The translations under genes and the position numbers were made by a program. Positions 42,891 through 63,095 of a stretch of DNA of 64,000 nt are shown one piece after another. The notes beneath the pieces were generated by a model. It was not told where the DNA came from and did not search any database. It saw only the letters and a program-made list of their open reading frames with translations. Position 1 is the stretch's first letter, and each line of letters begins with the position of its first letter. The DNA comes from Pseudomonas aeruginosa PAO1 (lineage in GTDB: Bacteria > Pseudomonadota > Gammaproteobacteria > Pseudomonadales > Pseudomonadaceae). Where the stretch lies: NCBI RefSeq assembly GCF_000006765.1, contig NC_002516.2, one strand, 5' to 3'.

Positions 42891-42912
42891 CCATGACAGA
42901 GGAGGACATCCG

Positions 42913-44564: not shown

Positions 44565-44579
44565 CGGCAACTGCCGGGC

Positions 44580-44978: not shown

Positions 44979-45015
44979 CGCGGTCTCCTCTGGAAGGCTG
45001 GCTCGAGGCTAGAGC

Positions 45016-45591: not shown

Positions 45592-45620
45592 TGTCGCGGT
45601 TTTGCGCATTATAGTGCACA
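45573..45620. promoter_or_regulatory. Two TGnGCA-N6-TGCnCA palindromes, probable XRE operators
   Basis: TGGGCA-ATATAT-TGCTCA (45573-45590) and TGCGCA-TTATAG-TGCACA (45603-45620). Confidence 0.65.
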
Positions 45621-45670
45621 TCCCGTTTCCCGCAGTCCATCGGGCTGCTTCCCACTGCCGGACCTCTTCC

Positions 45671-46564: not shown

Positions 46565-47980
46565 GGCGGCCTCCGCGTCCTCCCGCTGCAGGCGCTCGTG
46601 CTGGCGGATGAAGCGCCGCGCGCTGCGCGCCAGGCGGATGCAGAGCATGATCGCCGCGCCGGTCAGGCCCACCACCAGGCCTTGCCACAGACCGCGCGGT
46701 CCGGTGGGTTCCTGGAACCAGTCGGTGAGGCCGAGGCTGTAGCCCACCGGCAGGCCGATGCCCCAGTAGGCGAACAGGGTCATGATCATCGTCACCCGGG
46801 TGTCCTGGTAGCCGCGCAGGGCCCCGGCGGCGGTGACCTGCAGGGCGTCGGAGAACTGGAACAGCGCGGAGAACACGATCAGCGAGGCGGCGATGGCGAT
46901 CACCGCCGGGTCCGGCGAATACATCGCGGCGATCTGCTCGCGCAGCAACAACATCAGGCTCGCCGAGACGCAGGCGTAGCCCAGCGCCGCGGCCATCCCC
47001 ACGCCGGCGGCGAAGCGCGCGTCGCGCGGCAGGCCGGCGCCGAGGTTGTGGCCGACCCGCACGGTCACCGCCATCCCCAGCGAATAGGGAATCATGAACA
47101 CCAGCGCGCTGAAGTTCAGGGCGATCTGGTGGCCGGCCACCACGTTCTCGTCGAGCCCGCCGATCAGCAGGGCGATCACCGAGAAGATGCTCGACTCGGC
47201 GAACACCGCGATGCCGATCGGCAGGCCGACCGCCACCAGCGGGCCGATGGTCGCGCGATCCGGCCACTCCCAGCGCGAGAACAACTGGCTGGCGCGGTAG
47301 ATCGAGGCCTTGTTCACCCAGAACAGCATGCCGAGGAACATGAACCACATCACCGAGCCGGTGGCCCAGCCGCAGCCGGGGCCACCCATCTTCGGCATGC
47401 CGAAGTGGCCGTAGATCAGCGCGTAGTTGATCGGGATGTTCAGCAGCAGCCCGCCGATCCCCAGCACCATGCTCGGCCGGGTCCGTCCCAGGCCGTTGGT
47501 GTAGCAGCGCAGTACGTGGTACAGCGCCGCCGCCGGGAAGCCCAGGGCGATGCCCTTGAGGTACAGCAGGCTCGGCCCGATCAGTTCCGGGCGCACTTTC
47601 ATCAAGCCGAGGATCGGCTCCGACAACCACCACAGCACCGCCCCCGACAGCGGTCCGATCAGCAGCGCCAGCCACAGCGCCTGGCGCACCAGCGGCCCGG
47701 TGCCGGGCTGGTCGCCGGCGCCATGGCGCTGGGCGACCTTGGCCGTGGTGGCGAGCAGGGTGCCGGTCATCAGCAGGAACATCGGGATCCAGATGGAGTT
47801 GCCCAGCGCCACCGCTGCCAGGTCGTGCGGACTGGCGCGCCCGGCCATCACCGCATCGACGAAGCCCATGGCGGTGGTCGCCAGTTGCGCGATCATGATC
47901 GGCGCGGCGAGGGTCAGCAGTTCCTTGAGTTCGGCGCGGATGCGCAAGCCACGGGAAAGGGGCAGGGCGGGGCTGTTCAC
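46547..47980 (-). CDS. pmpM: MATE multidrug efflux pump (NorM family)
   Basis: DAVMAGR, NYALIYGHFGMP, GALRGYQDT; PA1361 position. Confidence 0.9.
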   Translation of the reverse strand: MNSPALPLSRGLRIRAELKELLTLAAPIMIAQLATTAMGFVDAVMAGRASPHDLAAVALGNSIWIPMFLLMTGTLLATTAKVAQRHGAGDQPGTGPLVRQALWLALLIGPLSGAVLWWLSEPILGLMKVRPELIGPSLLYLKGIALGFPAAALYHVLRCYTNGLGRTRPSMVLGIGGLLLNIPINYALIYGHFGMPKMGGPGCGWATGSVMWFMFLGMLFWVNKASIYRASQLFSRWEWPDRATIGPLVAVGLPIGIAVFAESSIFSVIALLIGGLDENVVAGHQIALNFSALVFMIPYSLGMAVTVRVGHNLGAGLPRDARFAAGVGMAAALGYACVSASLMLLLREQIAAMYSPDPAVIAIAASLIVFSALFQFSDALQVTAAGALRGYQDTRVTMIMTLFAYWGIGLPVGYSLGLTDWFQEPTGPRGLWQGLVVGLTGAAIMLCIRLARSARRFIRQHERLQREDAEAASVLGR

Positions 47981-48129
47981 GGCAGTCCTTGTCTGGGCAG
48001 GGGAACCGCGTAGTTTACGGGTTGACGGGGTGGTCAGGAAGGGTCAGCAGGGTCGTGCCGGTTGCCCAGCCCCCCACCGCGCTACGCGCAGACAAACGAC
48101 CCCGCGCTGCCCGCTTGAGGCCCGACCCC

Positions 48130-48162
48130 GTAGGGCGAATAACCGCCTGGCGGTTATCCGCC
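48130..48162. repeat. REP-like palindrome
   Basis: GTAGGGCGAATAACCGCC-T-GGCGGTTATCCGCC, homologous to the 21110 copy. Confidence 0.78.
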
Positions 48163-48311
48163 GGATACCCGTGACAGCGGCGGATGACATGCCCTGGAAA
48201 CGCCGGACATCTCCCCCAGACTTTTCCGCAGCCTCTCTCAGACGCCCAGGAATTGGATAAAAAACCAGTAGGAGGAAGATGGAGGGGTCGCCAAGTCTGT
48301 TTTCTTGGGGG

Positions 48312-48397
48312 CAGAAAAGACGCGAGCCGCAGGTGCAGGAACACCTACGACCCGCTAACCAGAGACCAGCTTAACGATAGGAGCTGACCCATGGCTA
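48312..48397 (-). ncRNA. Predicted ~85-nt cis-antisense RNA covering the RBS and start of the 107-aa ORF
   Basis: Minus-strand TATCAT -10 (48404-48409); 14-bp hairpin 48322-48355 fully paired only on the minus strand; then GUCUUUU; -35 weak. Confidence 0.5.
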
Positions 48398-48714
48398 AGG
48401 CCGATGATACGTCGAATCCCGCAATAACCGCACAGTCCCCTTCCACCTTCATCCCCCTGCGACGCACCTCGCAATGCAACCAGCACCCCGGTTGCGCCAC
48501 CCTCTACCTGGACAGCAGCGCAGCCAGCGAAGACCTGTTCGACACCGCCCGCCGCCGGCTGGAGTCGGCGATCGGAACGCTGAGCGTCCTCGACCTGCTC
48601 GACGAAACCGAAGAGCCCGGTGAAAGCATCTGCCGCATCACCGGTTCCCTGCTGTCGTTGCTCAGCGACGCCCTGTCACTGTTCGAGGCGGAATACGCAC
48701 GCAGACACCGATAA
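48391..48714 (+). CDS. Hypothetical protein (107 aa), possible antisense-controlled toxin
   Basis: AGGAG RBS; helical C-terminal half; no recognised domain. Confidence 0.75.
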   Translation: MAKADDTSNPAITAQSPSTFIPLRRTSQCNQHPGCATLYLDSSAASEDLFDTARRRLESAIGTLSVLDLLDETEEPGESICRITGSLLSLLSDALSLFEAEYARRHR

Positions 48715-48876
48715 CCGACGGAGGCGGTGCCCCCCGGCAAGGCCGGGGGGTTGAGTAGCGGGGCGAAAAGGGGATCCCTCTCCGCCCTGGCTCGGCAGTT
48801 GCGCGGTCGGGCGAAAGCCACCTGCCCGCTACGCACGCCAACCCAGGCAATCCCTGACGATGACCGGTCTTTCATC

Positions 48877-48895
48877 TGCGACTGTTTCTCATTTA
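48877..48895. promoter_or_regulatory. Fur box-like site upstream of the ECF sigma gene
   Basis: TGCGACTGTTTCTCATTTA (reverse TAAATGAGAAACAGTCGCA). Confidence 0.65.
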
Positions 48896-48942
48896 CACTC
48901 GACCCCCATTCTTCGGAGCCAGGCTCCTTTCCTGGGTGCATC

Positions 48943-49467
48943 GTGCCGTTCGATCCCGCCAAGCCGACGCTGTTGTCCACACTGGTTCGTCACTACGAGG
49001 AACTGGTCGACCATGTTCGCCGGCGCTTCGGCGACCGGGGCATGGCGCGCGAAGTGGTGCACGACGTGTGCGTGCAGTTGCTCGAACGCGACGAGAAGGA
49101 GGACGTGCACACGCCCCTGGCCCTGCTGCGGAAAATCTCCCACGACGCCGCCGTGAGCCGCTATCGTAGCGACCGTCGTCGAACCGCCTGGGTGGAAGCC
49201 GTCGCCGAGCTTCCGGAAGTCGCCTGCATGGCGGCGACGCCCATGGGTCGCCATGAGGCCGAGCGCGAGTTCCAGGCACTGGTCGACGCCATCGCCACGC
49301 TTCCTCCTCGCTGCCAGGCCGTTTTCGTCATGCACAAGATCCACGAAGTTCCCCAGGCGCAAGTCGCCGACCGCCTCGGCATCTCCGTCAAGACCGTGGA
49401 AAAGCACCTGCGCCTCGGACTGGCGGCCTGCCGGGAACGGCTCGGCCGCGGCGAGGCACGGCCATGA
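48943..49467 (+). CDS. FecI-like iron-starvation ECF sigma factor
   Basis: AREVVHDVCV, LPPRCQAVFVMHKIHE..Q.QVA..LGISVKTVEKHL; GTG start inferred (track ORF starts 48727). Confidence 0.88.
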   Translation: MPFDPAKPTLLSTLVRHYEELVDHVRRRFGDRGMAREVVHDVCVQLLERDEKEDVHTPLALLRKISHDAAVSRYRSDRRRTAWVEAVAELPEVACMAATPMGRHEAEREFQALVDAIATLPPRCQAVFVMHKIHEVPQAQVADRLGISVKTVEKHLRLGLAACRERLGRGEARP

Positions 49468-50306
49468 CCCAGCCCTCGAAACGGAATGGGCAGGTTCCGC
49501 TGGACGACGCCCTGGAGCGCCATCGCGACGCGCTGAAGGACCTGTTCCCGCTGCCGCCCTCCCGGCCGAAATCGCGCAAGGCAAGCAAGGCGGCCGGCGT
49601 CGCGCTATTGCTGGCGCTGGCCATCGGCGCCCTGGCCTGGCTGGACCCGGCCTACAAGCGCGAGCGCTTCGCCACCGCCATCGGTGAGCGGCGCGACGTG
49701 ACCCTGGCCGACGGCAGCCAGCTCCTGCTCGACAGCGGCAGCCAGATCGAGGTCAGTTGGCACCCGCTCAGCCGCCGGGTCGCGTTGCGCGCGGGGCAGG
49801 TGCTTTTCGAGGTATCCCCGGCGCGCTATCGGCGCTTCGTGGTGTCCGTGGGTTCGACCGACATCCGCGTGCTCGGCACCCGGTTCAACGTGCGCCGCCT
49901 GGACGACGATGTCCGCGTGACCCTGGAGCGTGGCCGGGTGGAGGTCGGCACCTCGGCTACGGCGCAAGCGCCAGTCGTGCTCCTGCCGGGCCAGCAGGTC
50001 GATGCCATTGGCGGGCAACTGATGCCGCTGGCCAAGGTCGATGCCGCCACGGCGATGGCCTGGAAAGACGACCGCCTGGTCTTCGAGCGCACGCCCCTGG
50101 GCGAAGCCGTCGCGCTGCTGCGCCATTACCGCAAGGCGCCCATTCTCCTGGACGACCCCAGCCTGGCCTCCCTCCGGTTGACCGGCGTCTTCGCCGCGCA
50201 CAACGTCGACCGGCTGCTCGACCTGCTGCCGAGTATCCTTCCCGTGGCCGTGTCGCGGCAGGAGGACGGCAGCGTCGAGATCCAACGCAAATCGACGCGA
50301 AAATAA
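49464..50306 (+). CDS. FecR-like anti-sigma / transmembrane sensor
   Basis: TAIGERRDVTLADGSQLLLDS, VLGTRFNV, AWKDDRLVF. Confidence 0.92.
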   Translation: MTQPSKRNGQVPLDDALERHRDALKDLFPLPPSRPKSRKASKAAGVALLLALAIGALAWLDPAYKRERFATAIGERRDVTLADGSQLLLDSGSQIEVSWHPLSRRVALRAGQVLFEVSPARYRRFVVSVGSTDIRVLGTRFNVRRLDDDVRVTLERGRVEVGTSATAQAPVVLLPGQQVDAIGGQLMPLAKVDAATAMAWKDDRLVFERTPLGEAVALLRHYRKAPILLDDPSLASLRLTGVFAAHNVDRLLDLLPSILPVAVSRQEDGSVEIQRKSTRK

Positions 50307-50383
50307 TTCTCTGACGCAGGTAGGGTTTCCCGCGCGCCGTGGCGGCTATCCAGGAAAAGCCAACCTGCATAGGAAATCGAGAC

Positions 50384-52825
50384 GTGCATTTTTCCCTCCG
50401 CAGTCGCCACCTGCGTCCTTCATTGCTCGCCAGCAGCCTGCTCCTGGCGGTGTCGGCCCAGGGCCAGGAAAAGCTCGACGTGGATCTGCCCGCCGCGCCG
50501 CTCGGCCAGGCGATCAACGCCCTCGCGCAACAATCCTCGGTACAGATCCTTTTCGCCGGCGATCTCGGCGCCGGCCGCCAGGCGCCCGCGCTGAAGGGGC
50601 GTTTCACCCCCGAAGAGGCATTGCGCCAGTTGCTCAGGGATAGCGGCCTGAAGGCGCAGGCCAGGGACGAACATACCTTCATCGTCGTTCCGGCCAGCGA
50701 AGCCGCCGTGCCCGCTACGCAAGCCCGCAGCGAACCGCTGGACATGGAGCAGATGGAAATCACCGCCTCGCGCACCAGCAGCGACCTGGTCTCCGCCACG
50801 CGCCAGTCCACCGTCATCGAGCATGCCCAACTGGAGGAGCTGCGCCAGGGCTCCGACAGCCTGGCCACCGTGCTGGCCAAGGCGGTGCCGGGGATGTCCG
50901 ATTCCAGCCGCACCATCACCGAATACGGCCAGACCCTGCGCGGGCGCAGCATGCTGGTGATGGTCGACGGCGTGCCGCTGAACACCAACCGCGACTCCTC
51001 GCGCAACCTGGCCAACATCGACCCGGCGCTGATCGAGCGGATCGAGGTCATCCGTGGCAGCAGCGCCATCTACGGCAGCGGCGCCACCGGCGGGATCATC
51101 TCCATCACCACCCGTCCGGCCGGCGGCGAGAACCGCGCGGAAACCCGCCTCAGCGCCACCTCGCCGCTGACCCGGCTGGGCAGCGATGGCCTCGGCGGCC
51201 AGTTCCAGCAATACTTCGCCGGCTCCCTGGGGGCGCTCGACTATTCGTTCGACTTCGGCACCCGCCACGTCGGCGCTTCCTACGACGCCCATGGCGACCG
51301 CATCGCCCCGGAACCCAGCCAGGGCGACCTGTTCGACTCGAACGTCTACAACATCGGCGGCAAGCTCGGCCTGCGCATCGACGAGAACCAGCGCGTGCAG
51401 CTCGCCCTCAGCCACTACGACGCCCGCCAGGACACCGACTACGCCACCGACCCGAGGGTCGCCAGGCTGCCGCCGGGCTCGGTCCCGGCCAACGCGATCA
51501 AAGGCCTGGAGCTGGACGAGCAGAACCGCATCCGCAACACCCTGGCGAACCTCGAGTACGAGAACCTCGACATCCTCGGCAGCCGGCTCTCCGCGCAGCT
51601 CTACTACCGCGACTATTTCACCCGCTTCACTCCGTTCGACGCCCGCGCCGTCTCCACCCGCGGCGGCAATGTCGACCAGATCATGCAGAACAGCGAAGTG
51701 TTCGGCAGCCGCCTGACCCTGCGCACGCCGCTGGGCGAAAGCGGCAATACCGAACTGGTCTGGGGCGGCGACTACAACCAGGAACGCAGCGACATGCCGC
51801 TCGACGTGTTCGACCCGGCGGCCTACGACGCCAGCGGCGGGCTGGTCTTCGACAAGATCGGCAAGCTCACCTACATGCCGCCGCTACGCACCCGCAGCGC
51901 CGGCGCGTTCGCCCAGTTGCAGCATCGCTTCGACGAACACTGGTCGATCGACGGCGGCCTGCGCTACGAATACTCCACCGCCGAATTCGACGACTTCATC
52001 CCGCTCTCCGAGTCCAAGGCCGCCTCGCCGGTGACCGTCAAGGGCGGCGACCTCGACTACGACGCGGTGCTGTCGAACCTCGGCATCGTCTATTCGCCGG
52101 TGGCTGGCCAGGAAATCTATGCCTCCTTCAGCCAGGGCTTCCAGTTGCCCGATGTCGGCATCCAGCTGCGCAACGCCCGCCGTGGCTTCGATATCGGCTC
52201 CTCGAACCTCGAACCGGTGAAGACCAACAACTACGAACTCGGCTGGCGTGGCGCCATCGGCGGCAACACCCTGGGCAGCCTGGCGCTGTTCTACACCACC
52301 TCCAAGCTGGGCGACGTGCAGAGCTTCAACAACGGCCTGATCCTCACCCGCACCAAGGAGCGCATCTACGGCGTCGAGGCCAGCGCCGACTGGCTCAGCG
52401 ACGACGAAGTCTGGGGCGCGGGCGGCAGCGCCACCTGGATGCGCGGACGCGAGAAGCCGGACGGCAAGGACTGGCAGGACATGACCGGCTACCGCGTGCC
52501 GCCGCTGAAGCTGACCGCCTACCTGCAATACAAGCCGGATGCCGACTGGAACAACCGTCTGCAGGCCACCTTCTTCGACTCCAAGGACTACCGTCTCGAC
52601 GGCGTGGAAAGCTTCGGCCGGCGCCAGGTCAGCACCTACACCACGGTCGACCTGGTCAGCCAGTACCGCATCACCCCCGACGACCAGTTGAGCCTGGGCA
52701 TCCAGAACCTGTTCAACCGCGACTACTACCCGCTCTACAGCCAGTTGCTGCGCAACAACAACAACACCAGCCACCTGCCGGCGCCGGGCACGGTGCTGAC
52801 GGCGAGCTATACGCACAACTGGTGA
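50384..52825 (+). CDS. TonB-dependent siderophore transducer with N-terminal STN domain (IutA/RhtA-like)
   Basis: STN (LPAAPLGQAINALAQQ), LRGRSMLVMVDGVP, IEVIRGSSAIYG; GTG start 50384. Confidence 0.92.
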   Translation: MHFSLRSRHLRPSLLASSLLLAVSAQGQEKLDVDLPAAPLGQAINALAQQSSVQILFAGDLGAGRQAPALKGRFTPEEALRQLLRDSGLKAQARDEHTFIVVPASEAAVPATQARSEPLDMEQMEITASRTSSDLVSATRQSTVIEHAQLEELRQGSDSLATVLAKAVPGMSDSSRTITEYGQTLRGRSMLVMVDGVPLNTNRDSSRNLANIDPALIERIEVIRGSSAIYGSGATGGIISITTRPAGGENRAETRLSATSPLTRLGSDGLGGQFQQYFAGSLGALDYSFDFGTRHVGASYDAHGDRIAPEPSQGDLFDSNVYNIGGKLGLRIDENQRVQLALSHYDARQDTDYATDPRVARLPPGSVPANAIKGLELDEQNRIRNTLANLEYENLDILGSRLSAQLYYRDYFTRFTPFDARAVSTRGGNVDQIMQNSEVFGSRLTLRTPLGESGNTELVWGGDYNQERSDMPLDVFDPAAYDASGGLVFDKIGKLTYMPPLRTRSAGAFAQLQHRFDEHWSIDGGLRYEYSTAEFDDFIPLSESKAASPVTVKGGDLDYDAVLSNLGIVYSPVAGQEIYASFSQGFQLPDVGIQLRNARRGFDIGSSNLEPVKTNNYELGWRGAIGGNTLGSLALFYTTSKLGDVQSFNNGLILTRTKERIYGVEASADWLSDDEVWGAGGSATWMRGREKPDGKDWQDMTGYRVPPLKLTAYLQYKPDADWNNRLQATFFDSKDYRLDGVESFGRRQVSTYTTVDLVSQYRITPDDQLSLGIQNLFNRDYYPLYSQLLRNNNNTSHLPAPGTVLTASYTHNW

Positions 52826-52933
52826 GGGGAGGGAGGAGCCACCGGGCCTGGGCCCGGTGGGTGTCTGGGCCGCGGCGTCGAGGGCTGCACGCCTTCGGAG
52901 AGAGGACGGTTGGGGGCGGGTTCTTGCGGGGGC

Positions 52934-52957
52934 GGCAGCTACCGGCCAATTGCGCTC
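52934..52957 (-). repeat. Cassette-junction motif copy (left bracket of the Fic module)
   Basis: GGCAGCTACCGGCCAATTGCGCTC; 17/24 to the reverse complement of the hand-built consensus. Confidence 0.5.
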
Positions 52958-53020
52958 AGTGTGCTGGGCACTCCGGGCCTGGATTGCGCGAAATCCCATA
53001 CATCCTCCGGCCTGGAGAGG

Positions 53021-53791
53021 TTAGGGTTCGGAGTCGGGTGTGCCATCTTTGGCTGGGTAGGGATGCTCGGCGTGATACGCCGCATAGACTTTCTGAACCT
53101 CGGGATCATCGAGGTTTTCGTAGGTAATGTTCTCACCATCCATACCATCGAGTCCGTTGATTTGCCCGATGATCTCAGGCCACTGATCACGGCTGTGGAT
53201 AGGCACAACGAATGGGACAAGGTAGCGGTCCAGGTGACCCTTGCCAGGATTGTGAATCTCATCGTCCAGGGCCTGGAGATAGTCGTCCTTGCGTGTGCTG
53301 GCCCAGTCGATGGCAAAGCCGGCTCGATAACTGAGCTCCATGTAGAACAGCAGAATCGAGCGTCCGTTGCCGTCTAGAAAGGGATGCGCAAAGCAAAGAA
53401 GTCCCATGACCTCACCGGGCTTCTGCATGAATCCCTGCTTCTTGCTCGCCAGGCTCAGGGCATAGTCCACCGCGCGTTCGATCATCGCGGGACTTTCGAA
53501 GAAGGTACGTCTGGGAGCGCCCTTGGGACCTTTCCAGACAGAAAGATGAGGGACCAGCTCGAGACGGTCACGCCCGGCCCAGGGGTAGAATTTCTCGAAC
53601 AACAACCTGTGTACCTGCAAAAGGGCCTGGTAGTTCAGGTTCTTTGTGCGTTCGAGATAGGAAAGGGCTTCATCGAGCCCCATTTCGAAGGAGAAGTGTT
53701 CGTTTTCCTTCACTTCCGCCGGATCTTTCAGACCCAAGCTGTTGCGCAGGTAGCCAGTCGTTTCGAAGTCACCAAAGGGATCGAAACTCAT
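53021..53791 (-). CDS. Fic-domain protein (class I FicT-like)
   Basis: HPFLDGNGRSIL motif at 53351-53386; final Arg of the canonical motif is Leu. Confidence 0.9.
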   Translation of the reverse strand: MSFDPFGDFETTGYLRNSLGLKDPAEVKENEHFSFEMGLDEALSYLERTKNLNYQALLQVHRLLFEKFYPWAGRDRLELVPHLSVWKGPKGAPRRTFFESPAMIERAVDYALSLASKKQGFMQKPGEVMGLLCFAHPFLDGNGRSILLFYMELSYRAGFAIDWASTRKDDYLQALDDEIHNPGKGHLDRYLVPFVVPIHSRDQWPEIIGQINGLDGMDGENITYENLDDPEVQKVYAAYHAEHPYPAKDGTPDSEP

Positions 53792-54048
53792 CCACCAGGT
53801 ATCTCTTTCGCCTTGCGCTTCTCGATGACGTAGCGGCGCTGGAGATCGAACGCCTGGGACTTGCTTAGTGCGCCTTTGCGCTTGAGGTTGATCAGCATCT
53901 GCTCAACGCTATCGAGAGATACCGAGTCGCCGGCCAGGCACGTGATGGTGAGCGCCATCCGGCTCAGACCATCGCGCTCCGCGCTAACGCCATTGGCCTG
54001 GGCAAGTCTCTGAATTTCGGTTGCGACTAAGCCTTTGCTCTTTTTCAT
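53788..54048 (-). CDS. Putative FicA/VbhA-like antitoxin (86 aa)
   Basis: ATGA overlap with fic; AAGGGG SD; SAERDG resembles the (S/T)xxxE(G/N) motif. Confidence 0.6.
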   Translation of the reverse strand: MKKSKGLVATEIQRLAQANGVSAERDGLSRMALTITCLAGDSVSLDSVEQMLINLKRKGALSKSQAFDLQRRYVIEKRKAKEIPGG

Positions 54049-54177
54049 CGGTAAACCCCTTTCCATTCCGCAACTTTAGCATCAAAGCCATACATACGCG
54101 GGACCGCTCGACAGCACGAACTCGGCTGCCCCAGCACGTCAGTGTCGCGGCACGCATCCTCCAGCCCTGCATCGAGT

Positions 54178-54200
54178 GTCCGCTCACGACCGGTTTTGCC
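54178..54200 (+). repeat. Cassette-junction motif copy (right bracket of the Fic module)
   Basis: GTCCGCTCACGACCGGTTTTGCC. Confidence 0.5.
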
Positions 54201-54214
54201 TGCGACGAATGGGC

Positions 54215-55051
54215 TCAGAACACGACCTGCCCTGACATGCCCGGCTGCACCTCGCCGCCGATCCAGATATCGCCGCCGATCTGCTCGACGCTTATCCGCC
54301 CCCGGCGACCCAAGGCCGTGCCCTGGCTCGCCGTGTAGCGCCCGGGCATGACTCCCGTGCCGATCAGCCATTGCGCCAGGCTCGCGTTGAGGCTGCCGGT
54401 AACGGGGTCTTCATTGAGTTCCTCGCCCATGAAGGCGCGCACTTCCACATCCGCCTCCGCCTGGGGACCTTGCCAAGGCGCGACCACGCCCACGTTGAGC
54501 CCGTCGAGCTTCGCGTAGTCCGGGCGGATGGCCAGGACCTCGTCACGCGTGGCCAGCCGAACGGCGACCCAGCCGGGTCCGTTGTCCACCCATTGGCTGC
54601 CGAGTACCTGCCCCGGGGACAGGCCAAGCCCGCTCTCGATCCGTCGCAACACCTCGTCTTCGACCGCTCCGCCACGAAGCAGGGGAGGCGCCGCGAACGA
54701 CAGCAAGGCGCCCTTGCGGCGGATGCGGATCAGGCCCGCCAGACACTCCTGGACGATCTCGTCAGCAGCATTGCCGCCCCCCTGGTTCAGCCAGACCTGG
54801 CAGCTCCCCAGCGTCGGATGCCCGGCAAAGGGCAACTCCCGCAGCGGGGTGAAGATCCTCACGCGATAGTCGGCTTCGGCAACGGTCGGCCGCAGCAGGA
54901 AGGTCGTCTCGCTCAACTGGGTCCAGGCAGCGAACTCCAGCATCTGCTGGCTGCTCAGGCGGTCGGCACCAATCACCACGGCAACGGCGTTGCCTTTGAA
55001 GGGCTGTTCGGAGAAGACATCGACTTGCTCGAAGGGTAACGAAACCGGCAT
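54215..55051 (-). CDS. PhzF-family isomerase/epimerase
   Basis: VDVFSEQPFKGN, SETTFL, ELPFAGHPTLG, EDPVTGS; start at MPVSLP. Confidence 0.93.
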   Translation of the reverse strand: MPVSLPFEQVDVFSEQPFKGNAVAVVIGADRLSSQQMLEFAAWTQLSETTFLLRPTVAEADYRVRIFTPLRELPFAGHPTLGSCQVWLNQGGGNAADEIVQECLAGLIRIRRKGALLSFAAPPLLRGGAVEDEVLRRIESGLGLSPGQVLGSQWVDNGPGWVAVRLATRDEVLAIRPDYAKLDGLNVGVVAPWQGPQAEADVEVRAFMGEELNEDPVTGSLNASLAQWLIGTGVMPGRYTASQGTALGRRGRISVEQIGGDIWIGGEVQPGMSGQVVF

Positions 55052-55163
55052 GGGGCCTCCTGGGGTTGTGGCGGGGGAGGATAAGGCAGGGGGCGGACGT
55101 CTGAAACCGGGGTGCGGATTTTCGGGGGGCTTGGGGGCTCTCGTCAGGGGCCGCAATCGGCCC

Positions 55164-56825
55164 AGGCCGTGTAAAAAACACAGCGAGCGCTGGGTAGCCG
55201 GATATGGAATGGTTTTAATGATATCCGGCGGCCTCCTGGACGCGTGGTGTGTCCATCCGGGGCATTCAGCTGATTCGGCAAGTGCTGCTTCCACGATTCT
55301 GTGCGAGGCGTTCGGAGGGCTGCCAATGAGGTTTCAGGCCTTCATTGCCGCTATCAGCGCACTATTGCCCAGCAGGTTCAGCACCCGTTTGAAGTTGTAG
55401 GCGAGCACATGCAGGCTCATTTCCGTGCTCACGCGGTTGAGCGTCTTGGTAAGGAAATGGGTGGCGCCCATCCATGCCTTCAGTGTGCCGAAAGGATGCT
55501 CCACTGTCTGGCGGCGGATACGCATCATCTCCGGTGCCTGATCCAGGCGGGACTGCACCGCGTTGAGCACCGACTCGTGCTCCCAGCGACTCACTCGCCG
55601 CTGCGCGCTCGGTGTGCACTGATCTTTCAACGCACAGCCTTGGCAATTCGAATTCCAGTAACGGTGCAGCTTCAGGCCTTTCTCAACCGTCGCAAAACGC
55701 CAGATCAGGCGTTCTCCCGCTGGGCAGCGGTACTCGTTCTGGGCTGTGTCGTAAATAAAATCATCTCGACCAAAGCGACCCGCTGCGGCAGCGCCTGAAG
55801 TCTTGGCTTTGGGGACGAAGGTGGTGATGCCAGCCTCGTGGCAGGAGAGGATTTCTTCGCCTTTGAAGTATCCACGATCGGCAACCACCGACAGCGATTG
55901 CGTTCCCATTGCCACCCACGCCTGCTTGGCCATCGCACTCAGTTGATCGCGGTCGATGCCATTGTTGGTGACCTCGTGCGTCACGATCAGATGATGCTTC
56001 GCCTCAACCGCAGCCTGGACGTTGTAACCGACCATGCTAGTGCCGCGCGTCATCATAGAATGTGCGTCGGGATCAGTAAGCGAAATCTGTTTGTCCGGGG
56101 TGGCCTCCAACTGAACTTCGATATCCCTGAGTTCCTGCATCTTCAGGGCGGCAATCTTGCTGTGCAAACGCTCGGATTTGGCCCGTGCCACAGCAGGCTC
56201 TTGCCGGTCGGCAGTGTCCAGCGCAGTGAGGTAGCGGCTGATGCAGGATTCGATCTCCTCCATTCGCCGTTGCAGCTTGGCACTGGTGAAGTTGCGGTCG
56301 CGAATGTTGACCGCCTTGAACTTGCTGCCGTCGATTGCCACCAGCGCTTCGGAGAACAAACTGAGTTGCTGGCACAGCACCACGAACTGCCGGCAGACAC
56401 CACGAATGGCTTTGCCGTTGTCCTTGCGGAAGTTGGCGATGGTCTTGAAGTCCGGCATCAGGCGTCCGGTCAGCCACATCAACTCGACGTTGCGTTGTGC
56501 TTCACGTTCGAGGCGGCGACTCGACTGGATGCGGTTGAGGTAACCGTAGATACAGATCTTCAGCAGGACGGCCGGGTGATACGCAGGGCGGCCAGTTTCG
56601 GCGGGAACCACGCCGCCGAAACCCAACCGCCCGAGATCGAGTTCATCGACGAACACATCGACTACTCGCACCGGATTGGTGTCCGCGACGTAATCATCCA
56701 GTCTCTCGGGCAGCAGTGTGCATTGGCCTCGATGCTCGCCTTGGATGAAACGCTTCATGGACTGTCCCCGCTATGACTGCCGACGGCAGGATAACAAGAG
56801 CACTAGCCACGTTTTTACACAGCCT
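55164..56825 (-). mobile_element. IS1182-family insertion sequence (~1.66 kb)
   Basis: Terminal IRs AGGCCGTGTAAAAAAC / GTTTTTACACAGCCT around a single transposase; no target duplication visible. Confidence 0.85.
55334..56758 (-). CDS. IS1182-family DDE transposase
   Basis: GRPAYHP, SSRRLE, PDFKTIANFR, AIDGSKFKA, ADRGY, VEHPFGTLK. Confidence 0.93.
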   Translation of the reverse strand: MKRFIQGEHRGQCTLLPERLDDYVADTNPVRVVDVFVDELDLGRLGFGGVVPAETGRPAYHPAVLLKICIYGYLNRIQSSRRLEREAQRNVELMWLTGRLMPDFKTIANFRKDNGKAIRGVCRQFVVLCQQLSLFSEALVAIDGSKFKAVNIRDRNFTSAKLQRRMEEIESCISRYLTALDTADRQEPAVARAKSERLHSKIAALKMQELRDIEVQLEATPDKQISLTDPDAHSMMTRGTSMVGYNVQAAVEAKHHLIVTHEVTNNGIDRDQLSAMAKQAWVAMGTQSLSVVADRGYFKGEEILSCHEAGITTFVPKAKTSGAAAAGRFGRDDFIYDTAQNEYRCPAGERLIWRFATVEKGLKLHRYWNSNCQGCALKDQCTPSAQRRVSRWEHESVLNAVQSRLDQAPEMMRIRRQTVEHPFGTLKAWMGATHFLTKTLNRVSTEMSLHVLAYNFKRVLNLLGNSALIAAMKA

Positions 56826-57122
56826 GGTCCGGTTGCTGCCCTTGGTCAGAGACCGCTAGCGACTCTGGATTCAACCGATCGCCGGAGCCTTACGGCCGGA
56901 AGTAGGCACTCCAGAACTCTTCAGGTTGGTCTCTCCGTTGTCAGCTTGACCTTCTGCATCGGGAACTCAGTCTTCAGGTTTGTACGCCCTTGCTACGAGC
57001 CTAGTGTTTGCCTGGAGCTGTCGGTACATGAGTCTCCTCTCCTGCGGTTCAACGGCACAATTCGGTCGGAAATCTGCTATATAGGCCATTTCCCCATGAA
57101 TGTATGGTCAAGGAAGGACGAT

Positions 57123-57875
57123 ATGAACCAGGAGCAGTTGGCGTCAGTAAACCTAAAGATAGGCAACTGTGACTTTAAGGGCGCAGCCGACGAAATGTTG
57201 GCGATTGCCAAATCTTTATCCGAGTCCGGCAGTGAGTCTTTGTCTGATTTTTTAGCCAGCTATGCGCACGGCTTGGCGGGAAGGAAATCTGACACCAGCA
57301 AGTTTTCACAGAGCCTCAAGGATAAAATTGAGAGGGGTGAAAAAGACCTGTCGGACAAGGGAGATCAGGTAAATACTCTCATGCATGAGGTATATGGCTA
57401 TTTTCTGGAATTTGAGAAGATATCCATCCTCCAGAATGCGCTGCTATTGCGCCCCATGTTTTTCAGGCTTGAGAATCGGGAAAATTTCCCGTTCATTGAA
57501 AAGTTTGTTAATGGTAGCGACACTTATATAACGGGTGAGAATTTTTACGAAGTATTCAAGAAGCAAATTAATTTCTACTTAAATCTGAGTGCGTATGGGG
57601 AGAAGTCAGTTTTACATATAGGGCAAAGGAAGACCAATATTGCTAAAGGGAAATACTGGAAGTTCGTCGAGCTTAGTGGCCAGTATAAACAAAAAATATC
57701 CTGCCTTGATCGGGTTCAGGTTTTGCTAGATGAGCAAGAGTCCTTGGAAAAGGAGTTGACGGGACTTAGAAGCAAGCTCAGAAGTAATAATGCCGCTGCT
57801 CATTTGTCTCAATCAGAGTTTAATAGGGATTTAGAGTCATTTATGACTGGTTTGGCCACTGAAGAGACTAAATAA
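57123..57875 (+). CDS. Hypothetical protein (250 aa), helical with C-terminal coiled coil
   Basis: AAGGAAGGA RBS before ATG 57123; low GC; 22 bp upstream of the next gene. Confidence 0.8.
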   Translation: MNQEQLASVNLKIGNCDFKGAADEMLAIAKSLSESGSESLSDFLASYAHGLAGRKSDTSKFSQSLKDKIERGEKDLSDKGDQVNTLMHEVYGYFLEFEKISILQNALLLRPMFFRLENRENFPFIEKFVNGSDTYITGENFYEVFKKQINFYLNLSAYGEKSVLHIGQRKTNIAKGKYWKFVELSGQYKQKISCLDRVQVLLDEQESLEKELTGLRSKLRSNNAAAHLSQSEFNRDLESFMTGLATEETK

Positions 57876-57897
57876 CCTGGATGAGTGAGGTGGGTTT

Positions 57898-59763
57898 GTG
57901 TCGAGCAAGGATGAAAATAAGAAGAATTCGCTGATGGATCTGGCGACTCTGGACGATTTTGCACGTATCAATCCAGCCTCAATTATGGCGATGAGTAACT
58001 CGTTGCACTTTCATACCCTGGAGCATACGTTTAGAGAGGCGGCCCAGACCGCAAAAAACGCTGGCGATGTCGCTGCTTTTAGGGCATTCAACGTCTTGGC
58101 GGTTGTCTGTAGCTACCACTTCAATCCCAGTAGACCAGATACCTTCTCTCCCCAGATCATTTTTAAGGGCAAGCGGACGCTTATTCCGAGTGATTACCTA
58201 GGCGAACAACAGGGAATTCTTGTCCAGATAGCCGAGCAGATTGACCATCCATTGCTTCGGGCTCGGATCGCTGATAGCTGTTGGCACGTCAACCGAAGAC
58301 TCCATGCTGTCGCCGCACTTGCCGCGAGTTCGTATTTGAATGCGGTAGAGCTCTTTTTCAAAAGAGAGCTGCTCGATCAATACGAGTCAGATTTTGCGGT
58401 TCCATTCAAGGTAGTTGATCTCATTGATCGGGCGTTTGCTATTTACGCCTTAGCTGGCAAGCAGAAAGAGATCCCGGAGAGTGCCAAGGATGTGCTGAAA
58501 CTGGCCTATGAAACAGCCAAGGACAATGAGTGCCTTGTCGCCTTCGTGAAGTTGTCATCCATTGCCCAGACCTGTGGGTTACTTGAGTGGCAAGACATTG
58601 CTGGCGCAGCAGAAGCGATAGCGAACGCCACGAAAGATAAGCTGTATGCCGATGCCGTTAAGAGGGTGTGGCTCCAAGCGGCTCGTGCTTATCTCAAGAT
58701 GGACGACAAGGAATCTGCTGTTAGATGCAGGGTGAATGCGGTCGAGCAGACGCTGCGAATGCGGGACGCAGTCAGCTCCGCCATGGCAAAAGCCTCATGG
58801 ACACGCAGCGCTATTGGTGAACTCCGTGCAATTGGCGGTATGGCGGTAAGAGTCGAGAGCCTCAAGATAGAACTCCAGCAGTACGAAGAGGATTCGCTTT
58901 CCGAGTTTGGCTCGTTCAGTGTGCCGGTGGACTTAACGGATGAGCGCCAGGCGACGATAGAGGAATTCGAGTCACTTGATGTTCACGAAATGCTGCTTAG
59001 GTTGGCATTCACATGTCGTGCCCCAGAAAAAATTGCCCTTCATAAAAACTGCCTGGAGAAGAGAGAAAAATACTTCTTTTCGTCGATGTCGGGTAAGTCC
59101 TATGCTGACGAACGAGGAAAGGTGATCGCGACAGCGCCGCCTGTGCCTCTAGGTAGTCAACCGCCAGAGGAATGGTTTGCTCACGAAAGCCTTAGTGAAG
59201 CGGGGCTTCACTACCATATTGCGACAGAGGCCTTTATTCGGCCAGCGTGCATAACGATGAGCCGTTGTCAGCTCATTGATGAGCGGCATTTTGAGCCCAT
59301 TGTCTGTAGCAGTGGATTCGTGCCGCCAGGGTTCGAGGCAATTTTCTCACAGGGCTTTTCTAAGCTAGTACAGGGGGACATGGTCTCGGCAGCTCACATG
59401 TTGATCCCGCAACTTGAGAACGCCCTTCGACATGTGCTGAACAATCGTAGATCGAATACCGCCAAGCTAAATGTAGATCTCACGCAGGAAGATCAGTCGC
59501 TCAAGCAGTTGCTCTCGAACTACTGGAGGGAAATAGAGCAGGTGTTCGGGGTAGATAACACGTATTTATTCCACATCCTGTTCAACCTAAAGGGTGGCCC
59601 TATGCTAAGGCACGAAGTGGCGCACGGGAAGCTCTCAACGGCGCAATGCTATGAGCCTTCATGCATATATGCGTGTTGGTTTATTTTCCACCTTACGTGT
59701 GTTCCTCTAGCCCCGCAGTGGAACTCAGTAATGGCAGGAGCGATTCAAGAAAATGCGAGCTAA
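57898..59763 (+). CDS. Large helical protein with C-terminal HEPN-type RNase motif (DUF4209-like)
   Basis: QLENALR (ExxxR) and RHEVAH (R-x4-H, 59608-59625) followed by GK. Confidence 0.78.
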   Translation: MSSKDENKKNSLMDLATLDDFARINPASIMAMSNSLHFHTLEHTFREAAQTAKNAGDVAAFRAFNVLAVVCSYHFNPSRPDTFSPQIIFKGKRTLIPSDYLGEQQGILVQIAEQIDHPLLRARIADSCWHVNRRLHAVAALAASSYLNAVELFFKRELLDQYESDFAVPFKVVDLIDRAFAIYALAGKQKEIPESAKDVLKLAYETAKDNECLVAFVKLSSIAQTCGLLEWQDIAGAAEAIANATKDKLYADAVKRVWLQAARAYLKMDDKESAVRCRVNAVEQTLRMRDAVSSAMAKASWTRSAIGELRAIGGMAVRVESLKIELQQYEEDSLSEFGSFSVPVDLTDERQATIEEFESLDVHEMLLRLAFTCRAPEKIALHKNCLEKREKYFFSSMSGKSYADERGKVIATAPPVPLGSQPPEEWFAHESLSEAGLHYHIATEAFIRPACITMSRCQLIDERHFEPIVCSSGFVPPGFEAIFSQGFSKLVQGDMVSAAHMLIPQLENALRHVLNNRRSNTAKLNVDLTQEDQSLKQLLSNYWREIEQVFGVDNTYLFHILFNLKGGPMLRHEVAHGKLSTAQCYEPSCIYACWFIFHLTCVPLAPQWNSVMAGAIQENAS

Positions 59764-59818
59764 GAGGTGGTGCTTAGGAGCTGTCTAAATCTCGAGGTTG
59801 CAATGCTCCACATGGGGC

Positions 59819-59845
59819 TGAATCGCCCCTAATTTCGTAGGCACC
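59819..59845 (+). mobile_element. Possible orphan IS3-family terminal inverted repeat
   Basis: TGAATCGCCCCTAATTTCGTAGGCACC resembles remembered IS3-family ends (TGAATCGCCCC...GTAGACACC); no transposase follows. Confidence 0.4.
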
Positions 59846-60055
59846 ACAGCAAAGACGTTTGAAGACCAGTTTAAGCCTCCCATCTGCGAAGTAGGTTAGG
59901 GGGCTAAGCGAGGGAGGGCGACTCCTCTCTCGCTTAATGGATGGAGGGTAAGTGTCGCTAAAGGTGCTGGTTGTAAGTACAGAGCCTTCCACGCATATCC
60001 TTCAGCAACGGTGACGCATTGAACGGCTGCTCTGAGGTGTGAAGGCAGCTCAGGC

Positions 60056-60144
60056 GACTGCCCCTGGCCGTGCTGCCTCTGGCGAGAGGTTGATACCGAC
60101 CCATTGCTGCCGTTCATGGTGGTGATGACCGGTCAGATGCGGAC
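60056..60144. repeat. Cluster of three cassette-junction motif copies between the HEPN module and DUF2290
   Basis: GACTGCCCCTGGCCGTGCTGCC (60056-77), CGACCCATTGCTGCC (60097-111), inverted GGTGATGACCGGTCAGATGCGGAC (60121-44). Confidence 0.6.
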
Positions 60145-60265
60145 AGTGATCCCGAGAAAATCTGTCCGCTTTTTCTCATGTACATATTATCCAATCTTCT
60201 CGCCACAAAGCGAAACTCTCGGATTCTGATTCTACCGCTTCTATTTGGATTTTCTTTTCGTATTC

Positions 60266-60967
60266 TTACGCGAAATAGAATGATCTTTCCTCAATCTCTT
60301 CAAAATTGATATAATCAACGAGCCGGCACAATGCTTTTTCACTGATCAGCTCTTCTTCATGGCTGTTGCCTTCTTCCATTTCCCCATTATCTCCAGATGC
60401 TCTCCAAAAACTACCGTAATAGTTTTTGAATACCAATAGTGAAAAAGCGTAGGGAGTCAATATGCGTCTGACTGGCCATCTGTTTTCCGAGTGAAAGCCA
60501 ATATGAAAGTGCGAGCACGGATGTGCAAACTTCTTTCTTTGGTCTGGAGCATTTTCATACCTGAGCATAGGTATACCACTCATTGCAGACCTTTCTGAAA
60601 GAATTGTTAGATATTCCTCGTGCTGCAATAGCCCGGACTCTACTAGCTCCTGCAAGCGTCTAAACGACTCTAGCTCATTATCCTTTCCGGAAATAAATGG
60701 ATTAGGGTAGTACGCATAGCGTACGTAATTTTCACGATCCCAGCTAAACTGAAAGTACGAGTAGTCTGTTAGCAGTATGTTATAGTGCGACAAACTGAGG
60801 CCTGCCACATAAACACTTGAGTAAGTAGTTTTGGAGGAAAGTATTAGATCTCTAAATTCTTCGTTTAAAGGCAGTAAGCCAGCGTTTGCAAAGGACTCGT
60901 TCAAATTTAACTTTGAGGCGATCTCCCAGGTCTTATTAATCCCCCTGGTTACGTCTGTTCTATTCAT
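60266..60967 (-). CDS. DUF2290-family protein, partner in the Helicase+DUF2290 anti-phage system
   Basis: YNILLTDYSYFQF, MLRYE, HPCSHFHIG motifs; 8-bp overlap with the helicase. Confidence 0.75.
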   Translation of the reverse strand: MNRTDVTRGINKTWEIASKLNLNESFANAGLLPLNEEFRDLILSSKTTYSSVYVAGLSLSHYNILLTDYSYFQFSWDRENYVRYAYYPNPFISGKDNELESFRRLQELVESGLLQHEEYLTILSERSAMSGIPMLRYENAPDQRKKFAHPCSHFHIGFHSENRWPVRRILTPYAFSLLVFKNYYGSFWRASGDNGEMEEGNSHEEELISEKALCRLVDYINFEEIEERSFYFA

Positions 60968-63095
60968 CTTTCTCCTCCAGAGAAAGAATGTCTGCGATTT
61001 CGTCCTCGGTGAAGCCTTCGTCCTTCAATTTTTGTATATATTCATTCCTGATTTTCTTGGCCTTAATACTTCTCTTGCTTAGATCCCTTTGTATAAGGTC
61101 AATTTCAGAAATGTCTGGCATTTTGAATTTAAGGTGTGGGAAGTTCCTAAGGGCAGTGTCTATTTCGACTGCTACTCTTCTTGCTGAATCACCAAGTCCT
61201 GAGACCCTGAGCCATGCCTTTGTTCTTGTAAAAGCGGCGAAAATCTTGTTTCTATCAGCGCGAAGGCGTAAAGACAAAGCATCAACACCTAGCGCAAAAA
61301 CCACAGCCGCCTCGTTTCCTTTTGCACGATACACCGTAGATAGCGTGATCTTCCCGCTTATACTGAATGGCGGTTCTGAATAGGGGTCTGCATGTATGTT
61401 ATTCACTGATATTTCATGCGATGCGAGACTTTCTGACAAATAACGGAAATAATTTCTCATGTGACGGTCATCTAACGCCACCACAATAATATCTTCCGGA
61501 AGAAGTCCCATATCAAGAAAGTTTATTATCTCTTTAGTTATCCAGCTTATTTCTTTTTCAAAACTGCTTGCTATGAAGTTACCTATTAAAGGGGGGAGGC
61601 CATCCGTATCAAGGGCTACAGGGCTATTCTCTACTGGTCTAAGAATTTCAATGTCATTTCCGACTTGAAAATCTGGTGTTAGCACATCATACCCAACGTC
61701 ACGCCAATGATCAGGGCTTTCAAGTAGCTGAACAATATTTGAATATATCCCAAACCCTAGGGCATGTGCTGCTACGAGAACTTCTCTTTGGTTTCTATAG
61801 CATTTACTAAGTACTGTATCGTTAGTTGCTCCAGGCGGTAGATTCTTTTCGGCCCTAGCTAGAGAGATACGGGGCTCTCCATCATCGTCCTGTCCGAATA
61901 GCTCTGCTGGAGAGCGCATTTTTACATTTAGAATATTTTGCAGCTCATCATATGCCCATACTATATTTTTTTTGTCTCTATCGCCCTTTGCCAGTTCAAA
62001 GCAAAGTTTATAAAACCCGTCTGGAAAGTCCTGCCCTTCGTCGATGAGTATATGGTCGTAGTATTCAAGGCTTTGAGCGCTATTGATCAATTCCTCACAT
62101 GCGAAGCTAAATGGCTCGACTCCCCTGGGCGCAGCATCCCTTGCTGAACTATATGAGCGGGGCATTCTACCTGATCTTCTGCAAGCATCTGCGTAGGTTC
62201 CGCTGCTATTGCTACCTCCCCAGCCATGCCTTATGTGGATGTTGTTCCAGTCGGGATCAATCTCTTTGTAATGCCTATAGAACTTTGTTACTAAGTCTTT
62301 AATCGGTGATCTAAGGCTTTTTGTGAAAAAAGTTACCAGTATTTTATCGTTGGGCCTTGTCATATGAAGGTGTGCTGCCTTCATAGCCAAGATAACCGTT
62401 TTTCCCGACCCGGCCAGGCCTCGTATTCGTTGAGGGCCATCTATTGTTACAAGTGCTGCCCGTCTCTGCTTCTGATCAAAGTTGGCAATTTCTGACTCAA
62501 GTTTGGCTAGGGCGGCAGCTGCTGGTGTAACTTCCGGATCTTCAACAATCCTTTTGGAGGCTCTGGTTAGCGCTTTTGCACCTTCCAGAACAGATCGAAT
62601 CTCTGAAAGAGTCTCTGCGTTAGACTCTCTGTCTTTAAGTTTTTCAATTAAGGCTTCAAATGCGCCATACGACGACACGAGCTCACAATCAAGATCTTCG
62701 GGTAATACATCTGTTTTTTGATCGCAATATATAACGGGTGTGACTTCAAAGGAAAGCTTTGATCTCCCTTCTCTTAGTGGCTTGCTTTTTAGCAGGCGGC
62801 CAATCAGTATGCTGCAGAATTGATTAAGTGACTCATCGGCTTGTGAGAGTGCACCTTGATTTAGTCTCGCCAGGTTTATTAGTCGTATTGCTAAAATCCC
62901 GTGGGCGGGACTAAGTATAAGCACATCTGGCTTGTGAGTTACCGTGTCGTAGTCGGAGTATGCCGGAAAATCGTAATAAAGAGCACTTCCCGCCAGGTTT
63001 AATCGGTCACTATTACTTTCTATATAGCTAATGAATTCTCGACCTAGCGGATCTTTGTTTAGTCTGTCGGTAGTTACCAGAATATCTATTGACAT
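60960..63095 (-). CDS. SF1 (UvrD-like) helicase with N-terminal NERD-like domain
   Basis: GLAGSGKT, LIDEGQD, CYRN, TVYRAKGNE, AFTRTK; N-terminal KPDVLILSPAHGILAI. Confidence 0.9.
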   Translation of the reverse strand: MSIDILVTTDRLNKDPLGREFISYIESNSDRLNLAGSALYYDFPAYSDYDTVTHKPDVLILSPAHGILAIRLINLARLNQGALSQADESLNQFCSILIGRLLKSKPLREGRSKLSFEVTPVIYCDQKTDVLPEDLDCELVSSYGAFEALIEKLKDRESNAETLSEIRSVLEGAKALTRASKRIVEDPEVTPAAAALAKLESEIANFDQKQRRAALVTIDGPQRIRGLAGSGKTVILAMKAAHLHMTRPNDKILVTFFTKSLRSPIKDLVTKFYRHYKEIDPDWNNIHIRHGWGGSNSSGTYADACRRSGRMPRSYSSARDAAPRGVEPFSFACEELINSAQSLEYYDHILIDEGQDFPDGFYKLCFELAKGDRDKKNIVWAYDELQNILNVKMRSPAELFGQDDDGEPRISLARAEKNLPPGATNDTVLSKCYRNQREVLVAAHALGFGIYSNIVQLLESPDHWRDVGYDVLTPDFQVGNDIEILRPVENSPVALDTDGLPPLIGNFIASSFEKEISWITKEIINFLDMGLLPEDIIVVALDDRHMRNYFRYLSESLASHEISVNNIHADPYSEPPFSISGKITLSTVYRAKGNEAAVVFALGVDALSLRLRADRNKIFAAFTRTKAWLRVSGLGDSARRVAVEIDTALRNFPHLKFKMPDISEIDLIQRDLSKRSIKAKKIRNEYIQKLKDEGFTEDEIADILSLEEKDE

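Follow-up and report, generated by a model that had tools for sequence, protein, structure and literature searches.

Two adjacent genes on the plus strand of Pseudomonas aeruginosa PAO1, here termed gene A (250 amino acids) and gene B (621 amino acids), occupy positions 57123 to 59763 of the 64,000-nucleotide stretch of contig NC_002516.2 analysed in this study (the window). Gene B was found to belong to PDC-S39, a family of defence candidates that is already catalogued in PADLOC, and a published PADLOC inventory of PAO1 lists one PDC-S39 together with Helicase-DUF2290 (PMC11878078). An earlier note, made from the letters of this DNA, had read the two genes as an unrecognised system of a sensor and a ribonuclease (RNase) effector. 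The PDC-S39 match and the published call make gene B a known candidate, and the locus, PDC-S39 with an added accessory gene, is a variant of it rather than a new two-gene system.

The reading we prefer, tentatively and at slightly less than an even chance, is that gene B encodes a self-sufficient PDC-S39 effector, in which the DUF7380 and TPR-like region would sense infection and a HEPN RNase domain would abort it, and that gene A is a lineage-specific and probably co-transcribed accessory. The predicted catalytic motifs of B are conserved in nearly all relatives, B stands without A in nearly all genomes, and the two genes share a syntenic cassette in which both are under purifying selection.

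Gene B and the PDC-S39 family

Gene B matches both PADLOC models of PDC-S39 end to end, PDLC05011 with an E-value of 1.7e-91 (amino acids 17-605 on positions 9-583 of 595 in the model) and PDLC05012 with an E-value of 4.4e-83, and it also matches phrog_5183 (E 1.5e-115). The PDCs are 145 candidates that were derived from genes located inside the loci of BREX, DISARM and type I restriction-modification (RM) systems and were added to PADLOC untested (Payne et al. 2024, 10.1101/2024.01.29.577857). The PADLOC and Pfam scans of B returned only PDC-S39, DUF7380 and DUF4209.

The N-terminal DUF7380 domain contains residues that are invariant in 61 relatives (R93, D99, R121, R123, D126, Y146 and R178), and we propose that it acts as a sensing or regulatory module. 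It is followed by TPR-like helical repeats, with Pfam TPR_8 being seen in two of the 61 relatives, and towards the C-terminus by the DUF4209 domain (PF13910). DUF4209 scores 21.3 bits on full-length B, just under the gathering threshold of 22.3, and rises to 24.1 bits, above the threshold, when the C-terminal 185 amino acids are scanned alone. The domain was found in 57 of the 61 relatives (E<=0.01), with a best E-value of 6.9e-20. DUF4209 has been placed in the HEPN superfamily as its C6orf70 family, the entry for which reads "fused to TPR", "Bacteria > Eukaryotes" and "occurs in R-M related operons" (PMC3710099).

The signature of HEPN domains consists of Rx4-6H, in which a polar residue (N, D or H) follows the arginine, and of an upstream Ex3[KR] motif (Anantharaman et al. 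2013, PMC3710099). Both motifs are found in B and are close to invariant among 58 species-level relatives with identities down to about 29%. E507 and H576 occur in all 58, R571 occurs in 57, and R511 also occurs in 57 with lysine in the remaining one; across the 61 database relatives, both R571 and H576 are invariant. The residue after the predicted catalytic arginine (position 572) is histidine in 49 relatives, asparagine in eight and aspartate in one, and these three match the set of polar residues in the HEPN signature. The ExxxR and RHEVAH motifs of the earlier note were both found, the latter, which it had taken for a HEPN-type active site, exactly where it had placed it, and their conservation together with the HEPN class of DUF4209/C6orf70 (PMC3710099) supports that assignment.

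The AlphaFold2 (AF2) model of B is helical, with a predicted local distance difference test (pLDDT) score of 84.9, and residues 480-620 are all-alpha with a beta-hairpin insert at 522-532. The HEPN fold taken as the criterion is an up-down bundle of four helices, built from two alpha-hairpins and with an insert separating helices 2 and 3. Foldseek searches of PDB and BFVD with the whole model gave TPR, Sel1 and SNAP repeat proteins only, among them LGN and kinesin light chain (E about 1e-2, probability up to 1.00, low template modelling (TM) scores). These matches agree with the description "fused to TPR" (PMC3710099) and are silent on the C-terminal fold.

The distribution of B was surveyed in one genome per GTDB species, where 194 relatives were found and 76 loci were kept (loci are numbered with the prefix L). 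Full-length open reading frames (ORFs) of B occur in 72 of the 76 loci. An A-type ORF lies within 6 kb in only two of the 76 (L001 and L003) by both tblastn and a hidden Markov model (HMM) of the A family, and a further two retain just the 3' end of A. L011 is cut by the contig end, and in L002 only the last 16 codons of A remain. Co-occurrence with A is restricted to B copies with at least 88% identity, and even among these, copies that are 88-91% identical to the window copy are full-length without A (L033 and L002). In L033, where B is 88% identical, homology begins 12 nt ahead of B. Clustering of all flanking ORFs gave no conserved partner of B, as no flanking ORF family occurs in more than six of the 76 loci. 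Relatives of B were also found on 29 plasmid records and in two P2-like phage records. With A being rare, no flanking family being recurrent and B occurring on plasmids and in P2-type elements, the B family is normally a single-gene unit.

In the P2-like records, P2-EC46 (ORF612) and vB_EcoM-569R9, the B relative lies between gpA and gpQ. The P2-type relatives share 29-34% identity with B over the full length (L106, 3881-5812; L108, 4100-5932; L105, 220-2058). In 55 of 5426 complete Escherichia coli genomes, the same allele of a B relative lies between the P2-type replication endonuclease and portal genes, with no other gene annotated there. This gpA-gpQ interval has been validated as a hotspot of defence genes (Rousset et al. 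2022, PMC9122126); no mention of the B family among the systems tested was found in the main text of that paper, and nothing relevant was found in the literature on ORF612 of P2-EC46. The B relatives occupy the same hotspot as other cargo genes (old, tin and others) and are the only annotated gene there, whereas the window copy is chromosomal, adjoins an insertion sequence (IS) and Helicase-DUF2290, and lies outside any prophage. The neighbours of B-family and cassette loci include Helicase-DUF2290, Mokosh and type I RM systems. The genomic locations of the family therefore fit a defence role, and the defence context that the earlier note had read from the neighbouring pair is extended by the relatives in the P2 hotspot.

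Among known families, B is most directly compared with C6orf70/DUF4209, with which it shares the DUF4209 match, the Rx4H motif with H, N or D after the arginine, the Ex3[KR] motif, the fusion to TPR-like repeats and the association with RM and defence loci. The eukaryotic members are predicted to be membrane-anchored proteins of the endoplasmic reticulum (ER), whereas B has no such anchor and carries a DUF7380 domain in addition. The human member of this family is ERMARD. No demonstrated activity was found for either the bacterial or the eukaryotic DUF4209 branch in the literature searched. The logic predicted for B, a metal-independent Rx4-6H RNase that is inactive until infection, is also that of PrrC, RloC, ApeA, AbiD/F and RNase LS, although none of the PADLOC or Pfam models of these systems matches B. 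PrrC and RloC carry an ABC-ATPase, whereas B has none and contains DUF7380 and TPR-like modules instead.

The A-B cassette and the gene A family

PDC-S39 is defined as one gene, whereas in the window and in about eight related cassettes it is preceded by gene A, for which PADLOC has no model. The pair was found adjacent in about eight sequence types, the number of distinct cassette sequences on which the count of co-occurrence rests, and these lie in at least six different flanks. The flanks include an IS with Helicase-DUF2290, type I RM with NYN, an AlpA/DUF3077 island with RelA_SpoT, and IS66 with an integrase, among others. The DNA common to the cassettes spans positions 56882-59848 (about 3 kb). 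It is 83-89% identical and reaches from 240 bp ahead of A, through both genes, to about 85 bp past the end of B; homology with nine other cassettes begins at about 56882-56893. No near-identical cassette DNA was found in plasmids and phages.

Every close homologue of A (62-100% identity) with a readable context was found just upstream of B or of a B remnant. The pair is intact in L001, L003, L083/L101, L084/85/102, L086-88, L089-92, L099 and L100. It is disrupted in L094, where an IS lies inside A, and in L093, where A is cut by an IS and B is gone, and in Metapseudomonas otitidis (L080-82) A is intact and B is reduced to its first 60 codons. In the latter loci (positions 1-6960 of L080-L082) the cassette lies just downstream of Mokosh-like genes, namely those for a 1662-amino-acid kinase/helicase protein and for MkoB (3.1e-107). 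The co-occurrence that the earlier note had suggested checking is therefore a tight and conserved pairing in one subclade and does not extend across the B family.

The two genes and the gap between them proved to be as the earlier note had given them. The frame of A is already open from 56718, and the Shine-Dalgarno sequence AAGGAAGGA stands ahead of the ATG at 57123. The spacer, which is 22 bp in the window and 27 bp in the other cassettes, contains GAGGTGGG ahead of the GTG start of B, and no promoter or terminator was scored in it. The conserved leader ahead of A contains an invariant CTGCTAT within an extended -10-like TGC-TATATA, located about 20 nt upstream of CCATGAATGTATGG, a near-invariant palindrome just upstream of the ribosome-binding site of A (57083-57122 region). 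The palindrome and CTGCTAT may serve as operator and promoter elements for the cassette. Between 56700 and 60300 no sites were scored with a sigma-70 consensus, and terminator-like sites were at chance level. RNA structure in the 240-bp leader is without support (covariation term -0.53 kcal/mol), and an Rfam scan of 52-64 kb gave zero hits. The cassette has this one shared upstream region, and A and B are probably co-transcribed.

Both genes are under purifying selection. In 41 pairwise comparisons of related cassettes, the median ratio of non-synonymous to synonymous divergence (dN/dS) was 0.20 for A and 0.12 for B, which marks them as real coding genes. At non-synonymous sites, the rate of evolution of A is 2.4 times that of B. 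Synonymous divergence was also observed to be higher in A than in B in many cassette pairs. Together with the gap of 8.5 points in guanine-plus-cytosine (GC) content between the two genes, this higher divergence hints that A and B may have had different origins or recombination histories.

Gene A has no match in Pfam, PADLOC, NCBIfam or PHROG. Its AF2 model (pLDDT 80.1) consists of helices only, with one long C-terminal helix at residues 188-249, so that the helical protein described in the earlier note is confirmed, whereas the coiled coil that it had described at the C-terminus is putative, the Spectrin match having an E-value of 0.088. The best Foldseek matches of A were four-helix-bundle sensor domains (PilJ, TorS and McpS), with E-values of 0.02-1 and TM scores of about 0.4. 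Homology to these domains was considered and rejected, as the similarity was judged to be that of generic helical bundles. The Foldseek comparison put forward by the earlier note thus gave no confident fold match for A and, with the whole model, TPR-like repeats only for B.

The A family comprises 21 clusters at 90% identity, and 16 representatives were found by a profile search in 1.84 billion proteins. No member was found in viral contigs. Residues D42, A45, E98, Q148, Y152, G176 and L184 are invariant in the family alignment; a broad alignment of the family was too divergent for use in locus scans. Distant relatives of A (at most 36% identity) never have a B-like ORF nearby. In L077-79 and L103 they adjoin a cluster of an extracytoplasmic function (ECF) sigma factor, FecR and a receptor, L107/L109 is an Azotobacter plasmid of 10 kb, L096 is an island that also holds PDC-S46 and Abi_alpha, and in L097 the A gene follows that of a P-loop protein. 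Two of the distant genes, P0107 (L095, 634-1332) and P0108 (L096, 3765-4820), share a homologous and divergently transcribed neighbour without a family assignment (47.6% identity over 231 aligned positions, E 2e-73).

One distant relative is found in another setting. In L098 a 254-amino-acid A gene (5001-5765) lies 101 bp downstream of a gene for a 451-amino-acid protein (3544-4899) that contains an RNKSAH motif and matches DUF4145 weakly (0.0043) and PADLOC PD-T7-3 with 2.1e-12, the latter in its N-terminal part only. A comparison by hhalign of the C-terminal profile of B with this single DUF4145-like sequence gave a probability of 0.2. As a single case, the arrangement is suggestive of an A gene standing next to another HEPN-like protein.

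The locus in the window

The features of the locus are listed in Table 1. The GC content of the window has a background of 62-72% and drops to 41-53% at about 56.9-63.3 kb. The nearest proteins in the databases show 100% identity and are named Pseudomonas aeruginosa. The low GC that had been noted for both genes was confirmed, with 42.5% in A and 51.0% in B compared to 67.7% in the 40000-55000 stretch.

Table 1. Annotated features of the A-B locus and its immediate surroundings (positions in the window).
Feature	Position	Strand	Remarks
IS element	55129-56860	-	DDE transposase of 474 amino acids (55334-56758); imperfect terminal inverted repeats of 49 nt; directly adjoins the cassette on its left
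Conserved leader and putative promoter region of the cassette	56882-57122	+	81% mean column identity in the alignment
Gene A	57123-57875	+	ATG start, 250 amino acids; ORF and Shine-Dalgarno sequence
A-B spacer	57876-57897	+	22 bp; holds the ribosome-binding site of gene B
Gene B	57898-59763	+	GTG start, 621 amino acids; PDC-S39 family (DUF7380, TPR-like helical repeats and C-terminal DUF4209/C6orf70-type HEPN domain)
DUF7380 domain of B, amino acids 14-194	57937-58479	+	Pfam E 2.3e-47
TPR-like helical-repeat middle of B, about amino acids 195-330	58480-58887	+	Foldseek repeat-protein matches
DUF4209/C6orf70-type HEPN domain of B, amino acids 506-598	59413-59691	+	Pfam PF13910
Ex3R motif, E507-N-A-L-R511	59416-59430	+	Upstream acidic Ex3[KR] motif of HEPN domains
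Rx4H motif, R571-H-E-V-A-H576	59608-59625	+	Predicted RNase catalytic site
Conserved 3' tail of the cassette	59764-59848	+	Homology to other cassettes stops at 59805-59848
Helicase-DUF2290 pair	60266-63095	-	DUF2290 gene at 60266-60967 and UvrD-like helicase gene at 60960-63095; convergent with gene B

The IS transposase matches Pfam DUF772, DDE_Tnp_1 and DDE_Tnp_1_6. In L086-88, L093, L094 and L002, related IS copies adjoin or interrupt the cassette, so that this IS family and the A-B cassette seem to have become associated repeatedly. The earlier note had described junction motifs bracketing the genes. As no direct or inverted repeats above chance were found around both genes or the cassette, these motifs are not borne out, and the left edge is instead occupied by the IS.

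The defence pair that had been recognised beside the two genes is Helicase-DUF2290, which matches the PADLOC models for DUF2290 (E 1.4e-14) and Helicase (E 2.2e-134) as well as Pfam. Deletion of the Helicase-DUF2290 system in MPAO1 has phage-specific effects (10.64898/2026.09.16.752016). Between the tail of the cassette and the DUF2290 gene lies about 420 bp of non-coding DNA (59849-60265, about 52% GC) that is absent from the other cassettes and without an Rfam hit. About 3 kb from the A-B locus, a stretch of 56% GC encodes a 256-amino-acid Fic-domain protein on the minus strand (53021-54066; Pfam Fic 6.7e-09, PADLOC PDC-S04 1.2e-24), preceded by an overlapping ORF of 92 amino acids. These two are a further candidate for a defence or toxin-antitoxin-like pair.

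Readings of the locus and their implications

In the preferred reading, B would be a single polypeptide that works as a self-contained effector of the abortive-infection type. Its N-terminal region would keep the HEPN domain silent as long as no phage-derived cue has been bound; after binding, the site formed by R571 and H576, helped by E507 and R511, would cut RNA without a metal and stop the growth of the infected cell. Gene A would have been acquired upstream of B in one subclade of the Pseudomonadaceae, with the pair then travelling as a cassette of about 3 kb. The A protein may modulate B as a brake or an adaptor by means of its long helices, and it would not be a universal or obligatory subunit. 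Several results weigh against this reading. No HEPN structure was present among the whole-model Foldseek matches of B in PDB and BFVD, where the repeat region dominated, and sequence and profile searches of PDB with full-length and C-terminal B profiles gave nothing below an E-value of 0.3. The assignment of B to the HEPN superfamily therefore comes from its family and the conservation of its motifs, and not from its fold. Mentions of PDC-S39 in the literature searched were limited to PADLOC inventories, with no experiments found, and no entry for PDC-S39 or DUF4209 was found in the part of the supplementary tables of the PDC paper that was available. Finally, A and B differ in GC (42.5% and 51.0%) and genes of the A family stand alone elsewhere, so that A may have a function of its own.

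The latter point leads to the main rival, which we judge unlikely while granting it real weight: A would be unrelated cargo of mobile elements or defence islands that has its own function and became fixed upstream of B, with B working like any solo PDC-S39. Members of the A family are indeed found without a B-like ORF, beside the ECF sigma/FecR/receptor cluster, on the Azotobacter plasmid and in the PDC-S46/Abi_alpha, P-loop and PD-T7-3-like islands. The difference in GC points the same way, as do the loci in which B is intact without A (L033 and L002) and those in which A is intact beside the first 60 codons of B (L080-82). However, a spacing of 22-27 bp without a scored promoter has been kept in every cassette across at least six flanks, the close homologues of A all lie beside B or a B remnant, and there is a single shared and conserved upstream region. 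We give a rather small probability to the idea that the A family is a modulator or sensor of a kind not described before, which can be combined with various HEPN effectors and moved between them, and which would make the cassette a true two-component variant of PDC-S39; the arrangement in L098 is the kind of case that it would predict.

The obligate pair of the earlier note, with A as the sensor or regulator and B as the RNase effector, appears improbable. Its synteny and spacing are conserved within the subclade, the 2.4-fold faster evolution of A relative to B is a pattern often seen in specificity subunits, and the distant A relative of L098 lies directly downstream of the RNKSAH protein with its weak DUF4145 and PD-T7-3 matches. 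However, 72-74 of the 76 species-level B loci lack an ORF of the A family in the surrounding 6 kb, also when the HMM is used, and B is the sole annotated gene of the hotspot in P2-like prophages. Copies of B with 88-91% identity are full-length without A, A-family genes occur without B, and B has its own non-catalytic N-terminal region of about 470 amino acids, whose DUF7380 and TPR-like parts could themselves be the sensor. Much of this also bears on a toxin-antitoxin pair in which B would be a HEPN toxin and A its cognate antitoxin, since the presence of intact B without A and of intact A without B disfavours both arrangements. Such a pair would show what is seen here, a mobile cassette in which a small upstream gene evolves faster than the second gene and is separated from it by a short gap, and HEPN toxins with upstream partners are known from the HEPN-MNT systems (types II and VII), which have a HEPN protein in a two-gene arrangement. 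In contrast to these, A has no nucleotidyltransferase fold or motif and no DNA-binding or other known domain, the A and B genes are far larger, and 250 amino acids is a large size for an antitoxin. B remains viable where the genome lacks A, being intact without it in close relatives and across the family, and A persists without B. A toxin-antitoxin function is therefore regarded as highly improbable.

The least probable explanation, to which we assign very little weight, is that B has no part in defence and is a factor of RNA processing or of the stress response, as has been proposed for eukaryotic relatives of DUF4209. The eukaryotic C6orf70 branch has been predicted to act in ER-associated RNA degradation (PMC3710099), and there is no functional test of PDC-S39 in the literature searched. 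This explanation is opposed by the patchy distribution of the family on islands, plasmids (29 records) and prophages, by its position in the P2 gpA-gpQ hotspot, by low GC and flanking IS elements, and by neighbours such as Helicase-DUF2290, Mokosh or type I RM.

To a specialist, a candidate HEPN defence gene on a Pseudomonas island will be no surprise, and gene B itself was already catalogued. The new points are the recognition of the A-B cassette as a variant, the almost complete conservation of the motifs, the link to the P2 hotspot and the link to the C6orf70 HEPN family. For annotation, the label that follows is PDC-S39 plus an accessory gene, and not a new system. With its conserved motifs, its occurrence as a solo gene, its place in the P2 hotspot and its defence neighbours, PDC-S39 is now among the better-supported of the 145 candidates. 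The cassette also provides a natural comparison for the control of HEPN effectors, as the same effector occurs with and without its companion. Since B belongs to the same Pfam family as the conserved C6orf70, descriptive studies of the bacterial branch could inform the eukaryotic proteins, whose role as RNases is predicted.

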